DNA from: Guillardia theta CCMP2712
Taxonomy: Eukaryota > Protista > Cryptophyta
Assembly (NCBI RefSeq): GCF_000315625.1
Contig: NW_005434669.1
Span: forward strand, 345,238-409,237
Length of the DNA: 64,000 nt
Direction: 5' to 3'
In this document: in pieces, positions 46,486 to 56,700 of the stretch
Layout of the letters: each line of letters starts with the position of its first letter
How positions within the stretch are numbered: position 1 is the stretch's first letter
Made by a program: the position numbers and the translations under genes
Notes under the pieces: generated by a model
Told to the model about the DNA's origin: nothing
Databases searched by the model: none
What the model saw: only the letters and a program-made list of their open reading frames with translations

Positions 46486-46497
46486 CCTTGCCTCCCT

Positions 46498-46573
<76 letters not shown>

Positions 46574-46596
46574 TCCTGCCTGCCTGCCTGCCTGCC
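46486..46596. repeat. (GCCT)n microsatellite
   Basis: Directly visible between convergent genes. Confidence 0.95.
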
Positions 46597-46837
46597 CGAC
46601 TGTCTCCATTGCTCCACCTGACATATCCTCACCCGACTTCCTTTCGCTCACCACCCCCGCTAACTTTGAATTCGCAGCCTCCCCATCCTCTGTTTCCTCG
46701 GCAAGTAGCTCAGGTACCCGGGTGAGCGGTCCCTTACTTCAATCAACAAGAGCAGCAAACGACTTGCATTCAGTTTCCTCCTTCCCTCTCCATCCCCTCT
46801 TCTCCCTCCTCCTCCTCCTGCTCTCATCCACCTGCCT

Positions 46838-48287
46838 TTACAGCAGCTTCAGGTGATCCGTAAGTCCTTTGAACTGCTGCTCGGGCGCAGGTCCGATCGC
46901 GAGCACCTGTCCCAACATCACGAGCAGCACACGAATTATTTGCCCCCTACAGTCCTGCTCCCCGCCGCTATCTGCGTCCTCCCAGCATCCATGACAATGT
47001 AAGTGATGAGGCCCTAGCAGGACACTTGACTGCACGACACACGCAGCGGATCCCCTCACCTTGGCTCCTGCCTTCTTGGCGATCTCCCACATCTCATCCT
47101 CTGCCTCACATTCAGCCCTCCTCCCCTCTCCCTCCCCTGCTCTCTCCTCCTCCNNNNNNNNNNNNNNNNNNNNNNNNNNNNNNNNNNNNNNNNNNNNNNN
47201 NNNNNNNNNNNNNNNNNNNNNNNNNNNNNNNNNNNNNNNNNNNNNNNNNNNNNCCCTCCCCTCCTCCCTCCCCTCGCTCCTCCTCCTCCTCCTCCTCCCT
47301 CCTCCTCCTCCCTCCTCCTCCTCCTCCTCCTCCTCCTCCCTCCTCCCCCCCTCCCCATCCCCCTTTCCTCTTCTCTCATCCCTCTCTGCCGTCCAACTCC
47401 CATCAGCCTCCCCTCCTGCCTCTCCCCTCCCTCCTATCCTCCACCTGTCGGGCATTGCACGCAGATTTTCGCCTACACGCTCCTCTCAGTCCGACGTTTG
47501 CAACACACAGGGACTGCCGTCTCACCTGGCCGAACTTCTCCCACCACGTCAGCGCGGAGGGAGCATACTTCTTCCCCCTCTTGTAAGCACCCAGCACAGC
47601 ATGCTGCCATACCGCCAGTGAGTCCTACCTCAGGGCAGCTCCACATGTACCCCGCATTGCGCGGCGATCTTTCCCTTGCCCATCTTGAGCTCCTGGTTCA
47701 CCACCAGCACCTGCCCACCCTCACGTCAGGAGCATTCGCAAGGTGAAAGGAGGAGGAGGAGGAGGAGGAGGAGGAGGAGGAGGAGGAGGAGGAGGAGGAG
47801 GAGGAGGAGGAGGAGGAGGAGGAGTAGGGAGAGGACGGGAGGGCGAGGCGAGGCATGTAGCAGCACTCACCATCTTCCCAGGCCCATCGGTCATGCCGAA
47901 GTCGTTGCGTAGCTTGTTGGAACCAGCTGTCAGGATCATTCAGCGACTGTCGACACTGCAGGAGGAGCTCTGGCGACCTCCATCCTCGTCCTCATCCTCG
48001 TCGTGCATCAAAAGGCTCTTCCTATCCACAGCAGGCGCGACAATCCTTGACGCCATGAAGCCTGCAAGTGCGACCGGAGCTGTCAATCCAATACCTCCTC
48101 CTCCATCCTAACCCGCTTACACACCCTTCAGCCCTCCCACCTTCCCTTCCTTACCCCCTCCCTCCTAAGCTTTCTCTCCCCCTCTCCCCCGCCCCTCCTC
48201 CCTCTCTCTCTCCCTCCCTCCCTCTCTCCCTCCATCCCTCCCACCTGCGCAGAACGACACGGCACATGCTGCCACGAGCCCCGCCAT
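46838..48287 (-). CDS. PTH2: Peptidyl-tRNA hydrolase 2
   Basis: Spliced [31 protein letters not shown]...WEKFGQAKICV...IVMDAGRTQIAAGSRTVLAIGPAP...LTDHLKLL-TAA; N-terminal hydrophobic anchor. Confidence 0.93.
47154..47253. other. Assembly gap (100 N) in PTH2 intron
   Basis: N run. Confidence 1.
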
Positions 48288-48439
48288 TCCAATGGCCCCT
48301 GATGAGAATCCGCGAAAGATGGTGGACCATCCGATAAGACCGCCGGTGACCGCCGGTGGCTCACCGGTGGCTGAGAAGCTTCGGAACACTACACTGAACA
48401 AGCCTTCTCAGCCCAGTTTATTAGCTCTAGACTACCCCT

Positions 48440-50712
48440 TCATCTACTGCTCGAAGACACTCTGACTATCACCCTGTCCACCAGCTCCTTGAAGTGCAAG
48501 CTCTCCGTCCTCGACAGACCTCCAACCTCCTCCGGCTCCAACGGAGTCACCTGTGCTCGCATACTTCCCCGCCGGCTCCCCCTCCTCCGCTTCGACTTGA
48601 TCATCAGCTCCACCATGTCCTCTGCCGTCAGCTCCTCCTTCAAGTCCCAGTAGCTTCCCTCCTTCTCCGCCTCTTTCAGCGCCTGCAGTAGATCCTTGAG
48701 GGTCGACCGTCCTTGCAGCCGCTCCCACGCGTCCTGCGCCTCGTTGTACACCTGATGGATCAGGTCCTCGCTCCCGTGCTTCTCCACTAGCTCCTGCCGG
48801 CTCGCGTAGCTGTCCATGACGATGGCGAGCAGCATGTTGAGGATGATGAGGGAGACGACGCAGATGTAGGTGCAGACCCACGCGAAGCCCATGCTCTTGG
48901 TCGTCTCGTCGAACGCCTTCAGCTCGCTCCAGACGCTCAGGTCCGCCACAAGCAGCTCGAAGCAAGTCATCAGCGAGTCCCACAGCGTCGCAAACTCCTT
49001 GATCTGGTGCCCGAAAAGCAGCGTCCCGATGCTCGCGAACCCCAGCTCGATCATCACAAACACGATCAGAAAGTGCACAATGTCGTTGGACGCCGCAAGG
49101 AAAGTCTCCACGATGATGGCCAGGCGCGGCTGAGCGCGGATCACCTCCAGGAAGTGGATCATGATGAGAATCAGGTTGACCGAGCACAGGATCCTGTACG
49201 TCCCCAGGTGGTAGATCACCTCCTGTATCCGATCCTGCCCCGATCCCGTCAGCCGACAGCCTCCCCCTCTCTCCTCCTCCTCTCCCTTACCTGGACCTCT
49301 GCCTCATGCTCCTTGAAGCTCTTCGCGATCTCCTCGCTGATCGCCGTCGTCTCCTTGAGCAGCCCCAGGTGCCACCAGAAGCTCAGGAACACCGACAGCA
49401 CGATCGTGCCCCCCGAGATCACGTCCCACACTCCCACCTCCCTCTTGGCTATCCTCTTCCTCATACGCATCCCCTTGTCCACCATCATCGCCAGCAGACA
49501 CACGTACCACGCTGCGTCCCACCCGTACGAGCTCGCGGGGTGGAGCGTGTACGGGTCGAGGATGACGGAGCCGATCTCGAACTCGTTCTTCACGTAGCCT
49601 CCTCGCTCCAGCTTCAGCTTCAACGAGCACTGCGTGAAGGTGCTCAGCTCCCCGTTGTACAGGGTGACGACGATCCGCACGTGCTCCGTCTGCCGGTCGA
49701 TCCAGTGCCTCGCCTCGAGGTACTTGACCTGCTTCGCGATCTCCTCCTGATCCCTCTCCGGGTCCAGCCAGAAACGGTACACATCCTTCCCCTCCTCTGC
49801 CGTGAAGCCCTGCGAGTAGGAGGCAGACTGCGAGAAGTCGATAGCCTTGCTGTACTCCTCCCCTCCTAGACACTCGCCTCCTTGGGCCGGGCCGGACGAC
49901 GGCACGTAGTCCAGCGGGGGGCAGAGCTGCACGCCGAAGGGAGCGCGGTCAGCCTCCTTGCCGGCGGGGTGGCACATAGAGCCATAGAAGGCGTCGAGGA
50001 GGTGGATCTGACACTCGACGGGCCGGGCGCGTCGCTGCTCGAGCCGGATGCTGCCGAGGATCTTGTTGTACTGCATCAGCCTGCCCCACTCGCTCTTGTC
50101 CAAAGGGGACCCATCGGGGGAAGTTTGCAGGAACGTGATGGGAACGAAAACAAATTCGAACCATTTCCAGAACTCTTGGACCTCATGTATCTCTGCGAAG
50201 TGAGAGATGGCCGCGTCGTTCCTGGCGGAGAAGAGAAAGACGTGCTCCACTGACTTCTCCACCAGGCTCATGCGCTGCACGTCGACGTGGTTGAGGACAG
50301 ACAAGAAGAAGGCGATGCAGGTGAACATGACGAGGGGAATGTGCCTGCACATGTCGCGAGAGATGGCTGTGCTCTCGAGGTGCTGGAGGAGGAGTTTGCG
50401 GGGAATGGCTGTAGCCTTATTGATTACATTGCTTGTCTGAGCGCTGGGGAGCAAACGTTTCAAGCTGGATTGTGAGCTGCTAAAACTGTTCCGGAAAGAA
50501 GCTCCGAGCCCCTCGACACTCTGTTTGATTCTTTGCATCGCATAGAGCCCCCGAAACGAACCGCTGTGACTGATCTCACTTTGCTCAGCCCCTGGCGGCT
50601 GGTTTGTTGCTGTAGCAGGATCAGGGTTGAGGGTGGGCTGTATGGCGTCAGAAATAACTGAAGCATGTGAGTTGGGCGCATCGGCCGCATCCATCTCCCC
50701 GTTATGTTCCAT
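48440..50712 (-). CDS. Polycystin-2/TRPP-like cation channel, copy A
   Basis: EFWKWF, NKILGSIRLEQRR, LEARHWIDRQT, TLYNGEL, FASIGTLLFG...EFATLWDS, IILNMLLAIVMDSY; intron 49223-49290. Confidence 0.92.
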
Positions 50713-53494
50713 GGCAGCCTGTTGACCGCAAGTGGGTCGATGGATCAGTAGCAAGGGAGGGCCTGTCGGACGATCTTCTGGTCGCTAAGTCACTACCGCG
50801 AGCATCGCGACCCTCGTCGCCCGCGCGCTAGCTGCATTCCTCCACCTTTCCCCAGAAGCCGGAAAAGGGTTTTAAGGTACTAGGTTTTAAGGTACCAGAA
50901 GTAAAACTTTGAAAAACAGAATGGTCAAGTTAAAATTGCTTAAAAGAAATATTTTACAGCTCACGAAGTAAAAATACTTATATGGCTTCATCTATATATA
51001 TATATAAACATGATTTTGTACCAAGTTGTTCACCCACATATATTCCATAGTACGAATTTACATCATCAGCCCTATAGGTAATTATACAGATTTGTACATT
51101 AAAACCTTGCTTCCCCGGAAATGGCGGCCCGGGAAGTGTCCGTGCGTTGCGCCTTCTTGTCCTGATCCTCCTGCCCCCCCCTCCCATCCCTGCTGCTCCC
51201 TCTCACACTGTTTCATCTCTGACCTGAACTCACCTATCTACCTCTCTGTCTCTCACCTTTCCCCTCGCCTTCCCCTTCGTCAAACTCCTGCGATATCCCT
51301 CCCTGCCCTTGACTCTTTCTGTCTTCGCCAGTGTTGATCTGTCCTACCGTTATCCCTCAGCTCTTCCTCGACGCCCTTTACTTTGAGCTTCCTGAGCCGT
51401 CTTCTCCTCTGCTTGCTTCCTGTTCCCTGAGGACATATTGCTCCATTAGTTTTCGCGCTGCTGCCCTGAGCAGGGTTGAACGGCCCCCAACTTCTTGTTA
51501 TGGAGGAGCAAGGGGCCCAAGAAGAGATTCAGAACAACCCCAAAGATGATCCGATCAAGCGGTTCCATGCGCAGAGTGCTGCGACGTTTGCATCTACTTT
51601 CTTCAAGAGCCTCTCGATCCGGAAAGGAGATTTTCTCAGGCACCTCGAGAGCACAGCCATCTCTCGCGACATGTGCAGGCACATTCCCCTCGTCATGTTC
51701 ACCTGCATCGCCTTCTTCTTGTCTGTCCTCAACCACGTCGACGTGCAGCGCATGAGCCTGGTGGAGAAGTCAGTGGAGCACGTCTTTCTCTTCTCCGCCA
51801 GGAACGACGCGGCTATCTCTCACTTTCAAGACATACATACAGTCTACGAGTTCTGGAAATGGTTCGAGTACGTCTTCCTCGATGTTGCATTTGTGCAAAA
51901 AGATGCAGCGGGCAGGAACCTTGCCAAGAGCGAGTGGGGCAGGCTGATGCAGTACAACAAGATCCTCGGCAGCATCCGGCTCGAGCAGCGACGCGCCCGG
52001 CCCGTCGAGTGTCAGATCCACCTCCTCGACGCCTTCTATGGCTCTATGTGCCACCCCGCCGGCAAGGAGGCTGACCGCGCTCCCTTCGGCGTGCAGCTCT
52101 GCCCCCCGCTGGACTACGTGCCGTCGTCCGGCCCGGCCCAAGGAGGCGAGTGTCTAGGAGGGGAGGAGTACAGCAAGGCTATCGACTTCTCGCAGTCTGC
52201 CTCCTACTCGCAGGGCTTCACGGCAGAGGAGGGGAAGGATGTGTACCGTTTCTGGCTGGACCCGGAGAGGGATCAGGAGGAGATCGCGAAGCAGGTCAAG
52301 TACCTCGAGGCGAGGCACTGGATCGACCGGCAGACGGAGCACGTGCGGATCGTCGTCACCCTGTACAACGGGGAGCTGAGCATCTTCACGCAGTGCTCGT
52401 TGAAGCTGAAGCTGGAGCGAGGAGGCTACGTGAAGAACGAGTTCGAGATCGGCTCCGTCATCCTCGACCCGTACACGCTCCACCCCGCGAGCTCGTACGG
52501 GTGGGACGCAGCGTGGTACGTGTGTCTGCTGGCGATGATGGTGGACAAGGGGATGCGTATGAGGAAGAGGATAGCCAAGAGGGAGGTGGGAGTGTGGGAC
52601 GTGATCTCGGGGGGCACGATCGTGCTGTCGGTGTTCCTGAGCTTCTGGTGGCACTTGGGGCTGCTCAAGGAGACGACGGCGATCAGCGAGGAGATCGCGA
52701 AGAGCTTCAAGGAGCATGAGGCAGAGGTCCAGGTAAGGGAGAGGAGGAGGAGAGAGGGGGAGGCTGTCGGCTGACGGGATCGGGGCAGGATCGGATACAG
52801 GAGGTGATCTACCACCTGGGGACGTACAGGATCCTGTGCTCGGTCAACCTGATTCTCATCATGATCCACTTCCTGGAGGTGATCCGCGCTCAGCCGCGCC
52901 TGGCCATCATCGTGGAGACCTTCCTTGCGGCGTCCAACGACATTGTGCACTTTCTGATCGTGTTTGTGATGATCGAGCTGGGGTTCGCGAGCATCGGGAC
53001 GCTGCTGTTCGGGCACCAGATCAAGGAGTTTGCGACGCTGTGGGACTCGCTGATGACTTGCTTCGAGCTGCTTGTGGCGGACCTGAGCGTCTGGAGCGAG
53101 CTGAAGGCGTTCGACGAGACGACCAAGAGCATGGGCTTCGCGTGGGTCTGCACCTACATCTGCGTCGTCTCCCTCATCATCCTCAACATGCTGCTCGCCA
53201 TCGTCATGGACAGCTACGCGAGCCGGCAGGAGCTAGTGGAGAAGCACGGGAGCGAGGACCTGATCCATCAGGTGTACAACGAGGCGCAGGACGCGTGGGA
53301 GCGGCTGCAAGGACGGTCGACCCTCAAGGATCTACTGCAGGCGCTGAAAGAGGCGGAGAAGGAGGGAAGCTACTGGGACTTGAAGGAGGAGCTGACGGCA
53401 GAGGACATGGTGGAGCTGATGATCAAGTCGAAGCGGAGGAGGGGGAGCCGGCGGGGGAGCTGGATTCAGCAGGTGACTCCGTTGGAGCCGGAGG
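48529..53494. repeat. Large inverted repeat: arms ~48529-50383 and ~51640-53494, 1256-bp spacer
   Basis: Homologous positions sum to 102023 at the inner edge, the intron donor and the outer edge, i.e. no net indel. Confidence 0.95.
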
Positions 53495-53595
53495 AAGGAC
53501 AAGAGATGAAGAAAGAAGACAAACAGCACGTCAAGGTCGCGATCGAACGAGCTCTTCGCCGCTTCATGGATTCGAATGGAAAGGCGAAGCATTGA
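51500..53595 (+). CDS. Polycystin-2/TRPP-like cation channel, copy B
   Basis: Same motifs as copy A; intron 52733-52800 (GTAAGG...CTGAC...CAG). Confidence 0.92.
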
Positions 53596-53757: not shown

Positions 53758-56700
53758 TCATCTCCTATTCAAGGAGCGGGCAAAATGATGATTGAAGTCA
53801 AGACGAATCAGCAAGTCCTGTAACACAGTCAATGCATTGTTGTCCACACTCTCCGCACTTCACCTGCAAGTGAGCTTGTTTGCTCCTTCCCTTCTGAAGC
53901 ATGAGATATATGACCTTGTGCTGCAAGCATCATCGTTACCTTCGTCGCTATTACCACAACTTCCCTCTCCACCACTCTAACCGTTACAAACATCATCGTC
54001 TTCTCCATCATTATCGATGTCAGCATTCTCATCACCAGTCCTCATCTCATCTCCACACAACTTCTCTGATCTCACCAGAAACCCGGTACTGTTCTCGAAG
54101 CTCGATTGAATTTTCTTCACCTGTTGTGCAAACTTGTCACTTCCCCCTCCAAGCTCAGACAAGAGAATCCTCGACCTCATCCAGAAAGTCATGCAGAGGA
54201 CCTGAAGGATGCTCTGCAAATCTATCCACTGCTCGACTGAAGTCAATGACGGAGGACAAAGCTGCACGAACGATCTCCAACACTGACGATGTGCGCTCGC
54301 TAACGCTCATCAGAGTCGCCACAAGAAGCAGAAAAAGATCAAACCTGAGCAAAGCTCTGTCTGTCACCGCTGCTAGATAAGTGTCATGCTTCTCTCTCAG
54401 GTCCTGCAGATCTTGCATCTTCTCGCTTTCCCGCAGACCCTGCTTGCCTCATGAGAGGAATGGAAAGAAGGGGAAGAGGCAGGAAAGAGCAGGGGAGGAG
54501 CGACGAACAAGGTAACAGCAGATGGAGGGCCAAGACAAGAGGGAGGGAAGGAGCAGGACAGAGGAATGACGCATGGTGCATGACCTGAAGCAACTCCTTC
54601 CAACTCGTGTGCATCATCTGAGATTGCAGGTATCCCTTGCAAGACCGTCAGACTCTCGTCACAACCGACATCAACCCTCGCCTGCATGATGGTAACGTAG
54701 TGCAGCATCTGGTGCCGGAGCGCGTGGCAGGTCGTGTGGGCGTGCGGGTGATGTTTGGAGTGCAAATTCTGAAAGGATTGTAAAAGTGTGAATTTCTAAG
54801 TGACGGCACAACACCTTCAATTGCTTCCAAGCAGTCGACAAGCAGTCAAGCGCTCTGCCCACATGTCTGTTAGTAGAGGTTGCGAGGGAAGTGCACTGAC
54901 CTTCGGATCTCAAGTACCAACCCAAGGACCCTCTGGTACTTCATCAAGCTCTCTCGGTGTATGATGATGCTTAGCGGCCATTCCACCTGCTCCACATCAG
55001 GGGAAGTTGAGCCTCTACCGCCTGCTCAGGACCTCATACGAAAGATAGAGGAAAGACTGCGAGTGCTTGTCGTCCTGCAGCTGTTGGTGCAACGACAGTC
55101 TGCGTGAGAACGGGTCTGAGTCCAAACGACTCTCAACCAGCGCCTGGACATGCGAGTAAGAACGAAAGCACGAGCGGTAAGACAGAGTTGAGAGGGGAAC
55201 ACAACAGAGAGGAGAGAGAACAGGGAAGATGGAGGAACAACGATGAGGGAACGGGAGGAGGGGACAAGGGCAAGGTGACTGAGCTGCTCCTAACCTCTTT
55301 CAGGATGTGCTGCAAGCTCTGCAGGACAGTGCCGTAGACAAAACCATCCTGCGAGTAAACGCCTCGTGCCAGCCCTCGCGCCCACAGCCCGTCCTCGGCA
55401 AAGAAGTAGCGACGCAGCGCTCGAAGGTGTCGCTCCAACTCAAGGTCGTCCAGGAAAACCCGAACAATCTCTTTGCTGACTTGCTTGTACTGCAGGAGGA
55501 TGGGGTTAACAATACAGTGCTCGATCGCCACGGGGATAGGGGTGTTGTAGTCCCCCCCCTCCTCCTCTTCGAAGTTGAGGGGCTCTGCAGATCTCGTTCC
55601 GGACTCCAGCGAGTCCATGTCAACAGAGTTCGGCTCCCCTTCACCATCCTCTTGGTCATCTTCATCATCAGAAGAGTCCTCTTGCAAAGCCTCCAGCTCC
55701 ATCAGAGAGATCTGTGACTGATCGCCAGTAGAATCTTCCGTCTGTGGCCCTCCAAAGTCAATTCTCTTCCTTGCCGCCTGCTCTGATGCCTCGCGTGCGG
55801 AATCTGTCGCTGGTCCTGCAACTCTGCGGAAAGCAAGCTCTTCACAGAATTCTTCGGCGTCTCTTGCAACTGAGTGGACTCGGTCCAGCCATGGCGTTAT
55901 GCTCATCTCACCAGCAGTCGCTTCTTCTGTTGCGCTGGAATCCACCAGCTGATCTGGAAGAGATTTTGAAGCTTGTGCCTCTCGCATGCTCCCCTCCTCC
56001 TCCTCCTCCTTCCCCCCAACATCTTCGTTGGAAGATTTCCTTTCCGTCGGGAGATGCTCAGCAGTGGTGCGCACAGAGAGATCAACGTCTGGTGCAGCAG
56101 TCGATCCACGTTCATCCTTGCTCTCTTCACTTTTGCCTTCATGTCGACGCAAAAGTTGGTCCCTCAGCTTCATCATGTCATTGATCGCCAGCTCAATCCG
56201 CTTGTCTTGCAGTCTCTTCCTCCTCGCGCTCCATGTCGCATTCCTCTCCTCATCTCTCAGCCGCTCAACCCGCAAGGAGTACTCTTCGATAATGGCTTGC
56301 GCTGCTCTCTCCTTAAGTGCAGCTAGCTCCTCCACACTAGAAGCCCCGAAGCGATCGACCTGATTGACAGTCTTCTCCTCCTCCTCCTTCTCCAGGGCTT
56401 CGCTCTTCCTCGTCCTGGCTCTCCTCTCTTCTACCTGATCCCTCAACTCTGTCCTTTGCTGCTCCTTCTCACGTTGCGCAGCTTCGAGGACGAGTGCCTC
56501 CCGTTGCTCGATGGATCTGTAGGTGGACGCGAGCTCTTGAATCTTCCTTCGGAAACCTTGTCGAGCCAGTTCCGCTTGCTTTCTCAGCTTCTTCCTCTCT
56601 TTCTTAGCCTGTGCTATCGCCACCTTTTCAATCACGTCATGGAATCTCCGATGGTACTCTGTCAATCGCAGAACATCGCTCCAGTTGTAGAAGAGCTTCA

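Follow-up and report, generated by a model that had tools for sequence, protein, structure and literature searches.

Adjacent paralogues that lie in inverted orientation and are kept alike by gene conversion have been described in Caenorhabditis elegans, in the hsp16 inverted repeat and the hsp70-7/hsp70-8 pair (PMC3966223), and among the hsp70 genes of Drosophila (Bettencourt and Feder 2002, as cited in PMC2871787). We have analysed a head-to-head pair of PKD2-like channel genes of the cryptophyte Guillardia theta CCMP2712, here called L and R, at positions 48440 to 53595 of a 64,000-nucleotide stretch (the window; assembly GCF_000315625.1, contig NW_005434669.1, forward-strand positions 345,238 to 409,237), in whose numbering all coordinates are given. 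It is very probably an ancient pair homogenised by recurrent interlocus gene conversion. Conversion between inverted paralogues is already a known process, and the Guillardia pair adds a protist nuclear case with direct between-lineage evidence. As in the hsp16 and hsp70 pairs, the two genes are adjacent and oppositely oriented, enclose a short unique spacer, are nearly identical into the intron, and are more alike as paralogues within a lineage than as orthologues between lineages; the Guillardia pair differs in encoding an ion-channel subunit, in belonging to a cryptophyte, and in that an island, old and under constraint, interrupts its tract and its coding ends are unconverted, so that the products are mosaic rather than identical.

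The palindromes of the human Y chromosome offer a second comparison. Rozen and colleagues reportedly described in 2003 the conversion of one palindrome arm by the other, and inversion of the spacer is a known by-product in sex-chromosome palindromes. The Guillardia locus shares with these palindromes inverted arms of more than 99.6 % identity, a unique spacer and conversion within one chromosome, but its arms are ~1.9 kb rather than 9 kb to 1.45 Mb in length, consist of gene parts rather than multi-gene blocks, and have no link to a non-recombining chromosome. In the primate opsin and RH genes, as in the models of Teshima and Innan, selection keeps islands of divergence inside converting duplicates; in the Guillardia pair, too, a short functional segment stays distinct amid homogenised flanks, although here selection is something we infer and both island types are known from CCMP2712 alone.

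In the flip/flop loci of the yeasts Ogataea and Komagataella, genes are exchanged between a site where they are expressed and one where they are silenced, and the two orientations have each been demonstrated (PMC6692504). The Guillardia locus likewise has an inverted repeat around a segment whose inversion would alter the joinings, but both of its genes are expressed, there is no evident site of silencing, and one orientation is known. At the protein level the closest references are PKD2 and PKD2L1 (structures 5Z1W, 5MKE and 5T4D), with which the products share the order of domains from the TOP domain to the pore (E ~1e-26), although the identity, estimated by visual inspection of the alignment, does not exceed ~25-30 %, and the algal channels are known from sequence alone. 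Our literature search found no paper that mentions this Guillardia pair.

Structure of the locus

Repeat search and base-by-base mirror comparison define a gap-free inverted repeat with arms of 1,863 nt (L 48526-50388, R 51635-53497), in which the mirrored L and R coordinates add to 102023 and the arms are collinear with zero indels. The preliminary description of the locus had estimated arms of ~1.85 kb without net indel, about four single-nucleotide differences in a 1.5-kb outer block, and a divergent cassette splitting each arm into two blocks of identity; all three estimates agree with the measurements. The outer block of 1,535 nt has 99.67 % identity, with four internal mismatches (L 49016, 49103, 49368 and 49640) and one at its edge, and the inner block of 174 nt has 100 % identity. 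The island that separates them (L ~50099-50209), called casL and casR in the two copies, falls to 56 % identity across its 89-nt core. Outside the outer block a copy-specific patch of 10 nt is followed by 28 further identical nt. There are no runs of N within the locus, the N gaps of the draft assembly falling elsewhere in the window, of which the pair is the sole polycystin locus and the sole long repeat. From left to right the parts of the repeat are as follows.

48526-48563, minus strand: edge of the L arm, the 10-nt copy-specific patch and 28 nt common to both copies and to both lineages compared below (QVTPLEPEE)
48564-50098, minus strand: putative outer conversion block in its L copy, with 99.67 % identity to R over 1,535 nt; one unitig of 1,532 nt, at double depth, in each of the DNA runs X1 and X2
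50099-50209, minus strand: divergent island casL (TOP-domain helix 2 and loop to beta-1, by PKD2L1 alignment); single-copy unitig depth 67
50210-50383, minus strand: putative inner conversion block in its L copy, which encodes the last part of the N-terminal region, S1 and the first part of the TOP domain; unitig depth 125, equal to two copies
50384-51639, no strand: unique centre between the arms; single-copy DNA unitig 50354-51669 at depth 55, RNA contigs 50354-50843 and 51126-51669; it contains L-specific N-terminal coding sequence (50384-50712), the divergent promoter region, the R 5' untranslated region and R-specific N-terminal coding sequence (51500-51639)
51640-51813, plus strand: putative inner conversion block, R copy, by mirror comparison and unitig depth
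51814-51924, plus strand: divergent island casR; single-copy unitig depth 58.5
51925-53459, plus strand: putative outer conversion block, R copy, by mirror comparison and unitig depth
53460-53497, plus strand: edge of the R arm, mirror of the L arm edge

A false inverted repeat, or a false identity of its arms, created by collapsed or mis-joined haplotypes or reads has to be considered in a draft assembly with N gaps elsewhere in the window, but is exceedingly unlikely. In an independent DNA run of 2021 (X1) each of the two blocks forms one unitig, at a depth of 127 for the outer and 125 for the inner, and casL (67), casR (~58), the spacer (55) and the tails (50-70) are all at single depth; a DNA run of 2011 has the same 2:1 pattern, and every junction is reproduced in X1. 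Blocks at double depth with islands, tails and spacer at single depth therefore exclude an assembly artefact, and against it stand also the RNA contigs and MMETSP proteins that back both genes and the presence of the pair in another lineage. Uniform divergence of the arms hidden by consensus collapse, which the preliminary description had set as a test of conversion, is not found, the blocks being single double-depth unitigs in X1. Contigs from the older and independent DNA runs have single-base indels against the reference at 50631, 50957 and 50975 (at low depth, in X2), and one insertion after 48153, in the L downstream flank, is at full depth in X1 and may reflect a reference error.

The two genes have two exons each.

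48440-49234, minus strand: gene L exon 2 (S3/S4 to pore and cytoplasmic tail; stop codon 48440-48442), from the open reading frame, PKD_channel/Ion_trans and RNA contig 48412-48591
49235-49290, minus strand: gene L intron, 56 nt, of the same sequence as the R intron; mirror of R 52733-52788, and proteins P0001, P0007 and P0008
49291-50712, minus strand: gene L exon 1 from its ATG (MEHNG...), with S1 and the TOP/polycystin domain, from the open reading frame and Pfam; the N-terminus of P0008 agrees
51500-52732, plus strand: gene R exon 1 from its ATG (MEEQG...), from the open reading frame, Pfam and the MMETSP protein
52733-52788, plus strand: gene R intron, 56 nt, GT..AG, phase 0, from an RNA joint that skips the 56 nt
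52789-53595, plus strand: gene R exon 2, from the open reading frame, Pfam, RNA and the MMETSP protein

Gene L (50712 to 48440, minus strand) encodes a product of 738 aa and gene R (51500 to 53595, plus strand) one of 679 aa that is identical to MMETSP protein P0007. That these are two TRPP genes transcribed outwards, as first described, is confirmed by the RNA, from which the divergent transcription is evident, and by the domains: Polycystin_dom (PF20519, 57-58 bits) and PKD_channel (PF08016, 68 bits) lie above the curated Pfam cut-offs in both. Over residues ~85-630 the products align to the PKD2L1 and PKD2 structures with E values of 1e-26 to 1e-21; judged by sequence, both are TRPP, or polycystin-2-like, channels with a TOP domain between S1 and S2 and a transmembrane core. 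The intron had been described as identical between the arms and 68 nt long; the identity stands, and the length of 68 nt is ruled out by the RNA contig that skips exactly R 52733-52788 and by the three transcript-derived proteins, which together with a 45 % identical paralogue agree on the junction AEVQ/DRIQEV. This paralogue, P0002 (L004:10022-12183), is the closest other one and is single-copy at its own locus; the 10 kb to its left and to its right contain no inverted partner, and its intron lies at the same position as that of the pair but has 113 nt.

The NCBI models GUITHDRAFT_64210 (48440-50754) and GUITHDRAFT_84240 (51476-53595) are partial, with 249 and 333 aa and internal pieces missing; MMETSP transcripts support the full products of 738 and 679 aa. 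Directly upstream of the inner block both copies carry a polypyrimidine-CAG motif that resembles a splice acceptor (51620-51639 and 50384-50403). Since the RNA contigs run collinearly through this point, no intron lies here and the motif was rejected as an acceptor; it is perhaps left over from an ancestral intron, or else coincidental.

Evidence for gene conversion between the two copies

Two genomic contigs of the ENA metagenome assemblies PRJEB17505, L001 and L002, come from a second lineage; they were found via protein-cluster open reading frames and are short megahit contigs from two different runs. The tail in L001 is of the L type, that in L002 is of the R type and is accompanied by the R flank. 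The lineage is Guillardia-like, close to CCMP2712 but distinct, with flanks ~5 % diverged; its identification as Hanusia phi was considered and ruled out, the inner-block protein of Hanusia being far more divergent. In a four-way alignment of these contigs with the two CCMP2712 copies (winL and winR), the tails hold 60 orthology sites and no concerted site, whereas the outer block holds 34 concerted sites, fixed between the lineages and common to both copies, one orthology site at its extreme edge and no cross site. Identity is 99.67 % between winL and winR and 99.28 % between L001 and L002, but 97.2-97.4 % between lineages. At synonymous sites the divergence of L from R is 0.012 and that of one lineage from the other 0.056-0.067, and in the intron, too, substitutions and a 3-nt indel are common to both copies of a lineage.

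Paralogues within a lineage are thus closer than orthologues between lineages while the flanks remain orthologous, which is the mark of concerted evolution. Since the tails are orthologous in both lineages, the duplication must be older than the lineage split and the body must have been homogenised since; conversion is needed because winL and winR are closer to each other than to either copy of the other lineage; and purifying selection is excluded as the cause because the homogeneity reaches the intron and the synonymous sites. The proposal in the preliminary description that an old duplication is being homogenised by conversion is therefore strongly supported, by 34 body sites against one, by the 60 orthology sites of the tails, by the intron and synonymous identity and by the double-depth blocks.

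The alternative that the pair arose by a recent segmental inverted duplication of ~1.86 kb, without conversion, and that the arms are alike because they are young, would account for their very high identity and sharp edges and for the lack of detectable homology between the N-termini. It is nevertheless scarcely credible, given that the orthologues of the tails sit in a lineage that is ~2.7 % away in the body, yet the CCMP2712 copies are 0.33 % apart, that the island within the arms is saturated at synonymous sites, and that the tails are homologous. The last point bears also on the earlier statement that both the N-termini and the C-tails are unrelated, which stands for the N-termini, where no similarity is detectable (permutation p ~0.45), but not for the C-tails, which past PLEPEE retain a weak but significant protein homology (p = 0.004). 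The L-type N-terminus is kept in a Hanusia phi fragment (P0012, EukProt), and the N-terminal module is therefore old. The P0012 transcript fragment breaks off within the region that corresponds to the inner block, which would be expected of a contig if Hanusia, too, had two copies sharing that block.

Several points weigh against an ancient pair under recurrent conversion. The second lineage consists of two short contigs from different runs, and megahit, we presume, merges near-identical bubbles, so that the near-identity of L001 and L002 is perhaps partly an assembly collapse; the inference of conversion in CCMP2712 holds regardless, and the 5 % divergence of the flanks argues against these contigs being contaminants or chimeras of CCMP2712 reads. 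The second lineage yielded only L-type cassettes, so that both types are known from CCMP2712 only and selection for keeping them apart is conjectural. For the N-terminal module only, a duplication that was partial and took on a new 5' end may account for the difference between the copies. Finally, the contrast in G+C content at third codon positions (GC3) is confounded, in that the single-copy paralogue likewise has a GC3-rich body and GC3-poor termini. In the pair GC3 is 0.86-0.91 in the blocks, 0.58 and 0.61 in the islands and 0.56-0.73 in the ends; in the single-copy paralogue (L004) the body is at 0.82, the equivalent of the island at 0.85 and the ends are GC3-poor. What is specific to the pair is the dip at the island (Fisher p = 0.012) and an excess of 0.08 in the body (0.90 vs 0.82), which is suggestive of biased conversion, the GC3 step as a proof of such bias being weakened by the control. 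No third lineage was obtained from a protein-pattern scan of JGI metagenome contigs or with a degenerate DNA pattern of the invariant YLEARHWIDRQT motif.

In the mechanism that we favour, non-reciprocal recombination between the inverted copies would keep ~1.7 kb of each gene, the intron included, nearly identical, and three modules would have escaped it: the cytoplasmic N-terminus, the island of ~33 codons and the last ~30-40 codons. As the escaped modules would be too divergent to pair, the edges of the tract would be self-sustaining. The likely outcome is two co-expressed subunits with the same pore, voltage-sensor-like domain and TOP core but with different cytoplasmic ends and a different outer lid surface, and the two may well differ in function. 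The pair thus amounts to a natural domain swap, the copies differing only in their cytoplasmic ends and in helix 2 of the TOP lid, and these are the places where the subunits may have specialised, in partner or ligand contact, trafficking or regulation.

The divergent island

The two forms of the island, casL and casR, differ at 43 of 105 nt, with a nonsynonymous divergence (dN) of 0.40 and a saturated synonymous divergence (dS), and the third paralogue, P0002, is equidistant from both (19/35 aa each). Between lineages casL has a dN of 0.037 and a dS of 0.218, indicating purifying selection. The saturation, the equidistance and the conservation between lineages establish that the island is ancient and constrained, and rule out its interpretation as a hypervariable cassette. 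Alignment to PKD2L1, with the W-12-Y/F spacing that is conserved in helix 2 of PC2 (PMC10192930), places the island in helix 2 of the TOP domain, one of its two extracellular-facing helices, and in the loop toward beta-1. It is presumably selection against conversion that maintains it.

A sharply bounded patch amid identical sequence is also what a short ectopic tract would leave, and the island might have been imported into one of the copies by conversion from a third, distant polycystin paralogue. This is very improbable, given that P0002, the one other close paralogue found, is equidistant from casL and casR and that dS is saturated (polycystins of G. theta more distantly related than this lay outside the screen), and that each cassette is single-copy by depth. 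We therefore retain an old, constrained island between two converting blocks.

The contig with the R-type tail, L002, carries at positions 1-90 an L-type cassette identical to that of the L-tail contig (L001:1-300). Conversion across the island, inversion and a chimeric assembly are possible explanations. A short-query word search for the R-type cassette in other lineages returned only an NCBI partial model and the Hanusia fragment, which ends before the cassette.

Possible inversion of the centre and chimeric assemblies

The preliminary description had further proposed that crossovers in either block re-pair N-terminus, cassette and tail, by analogy with the inverted-repeat flip-flop of yeasts. 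The geometry does permit this, since an inverted repeat flanks an invertible segment, and an occasional crossover could possibly invert the centre as a by-product of conversion. Three assembled sequences have the structure that inversion would produce: the transcript assembly P0001/L003 has the L N-terminus and is 100 % R from the inner block on; P0008 joins the L N-terminus and casL to the R-type single-nucleotide variant and the R tail; and the genomic contig L002 of the second lineage joins a casL-type cassette to the R tail and R flank.

Against a switch frequent enough to serve as a mechanism of diversity, both transcript chimeras open with L-specific sequence and at the repeat node go over to the R branch, which is the more abundant one, and the RNA depths of casR (372), casL (144) and the L tail (23) match an assembler's abundance-driven choice of path. 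The assemblies include no reciprocal product with the L tail, and at the Ile/Thr site every transcript assembly has the R state, which is that of the majority, an outcome expected from bubble popping. Of the RNA depth, L accounts for a share of 0.236 at the N-termini and of 0.279 at the cassettes, which gives a crude flipped fraction of ~8 %, within noise; as the L:R ratio is kept across the inner block, most transcripts retain the parental linkage there. L002 ends inside the cassette and belongs to a fragmentary metagenome assembly, and the erasure of casR by conversion explains it equally well. All contigs built from short words break at the repeat edges, so that none spans a block, and the sole raw run consists of 60-nt 3'-end reads.

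It is thus improbable that crossing-over in either block, in a culture or between strains, turns the centre around at a rate that would make chimeric subunits a means of diversity, and nothing indicates a programmed or frequent switch; of the re-pairing first envisaged, the geometry is borne out and actual switching is not, the chimeras being ambiguous and the L:R ratio of the RNA being preserved. In respect of expression the analogy to the yeast loci fails, both genes being co-expressed in RNA run X4 rather than exchanged between a site of expression and one of repression (PMC6692504); since they are expressed together, there is no on/off site of the kind found in those loci. As regards a recombinase, the two polycystin genes are all that the locus shows, the remainder of the window not having been screened. 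That the centre is genuinely inverted in cultures or between strains, with the chimeric transcripts and the casL and R-tail linkage being real, we regard as improbable in the same degree; if it were true, up to eight combinations of N-terminus, TOP helix and C-tail could come from two genes, and a eukaryotic nucleus would be using recombination to diversify a sensory channel. For annotators and users of transcriptomes the locus is a warning in any case, as its NCBI models are partial and its de novo transcript assemblies chimeric.

Transcription and flanking sequences

In RNA run X4 there are contigs for both N-termini, at depths of 100 (L) and 323 (R), and both cassettes are found at the depths given above; the L tail is present, and the outer block continues into the R tail. 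In a 3'-end library (X24) the ends of L and R occur at similar depth on opposite strands, and a poly(A) site of gene L lies near 48403, as marked by 3'-end reads and a poly-T loose end. The segment ~50844-51125 of the centre, which is not covered by any RNA contig, is presumably the shared divergent promoter region. At the other end of gene R, one RNA contig of 5.9 kb spans the gene and runs into its convergent downstream neighbour, so the 3' ends of the two overlap. A joint in this contig, which removes 46 nt (CT..AC) at 53817-53862, corresponds to a GT..AG intron of a minus-strand transcript. On the left side, 46489-46604 and 47254-47848 contain a long (CCTGCC)n microsatellite and tracts of (CCT)n and (AGG)n that form low-complexity inverted repeats and adjoin the 100-N assembly gap at 47154-47253.

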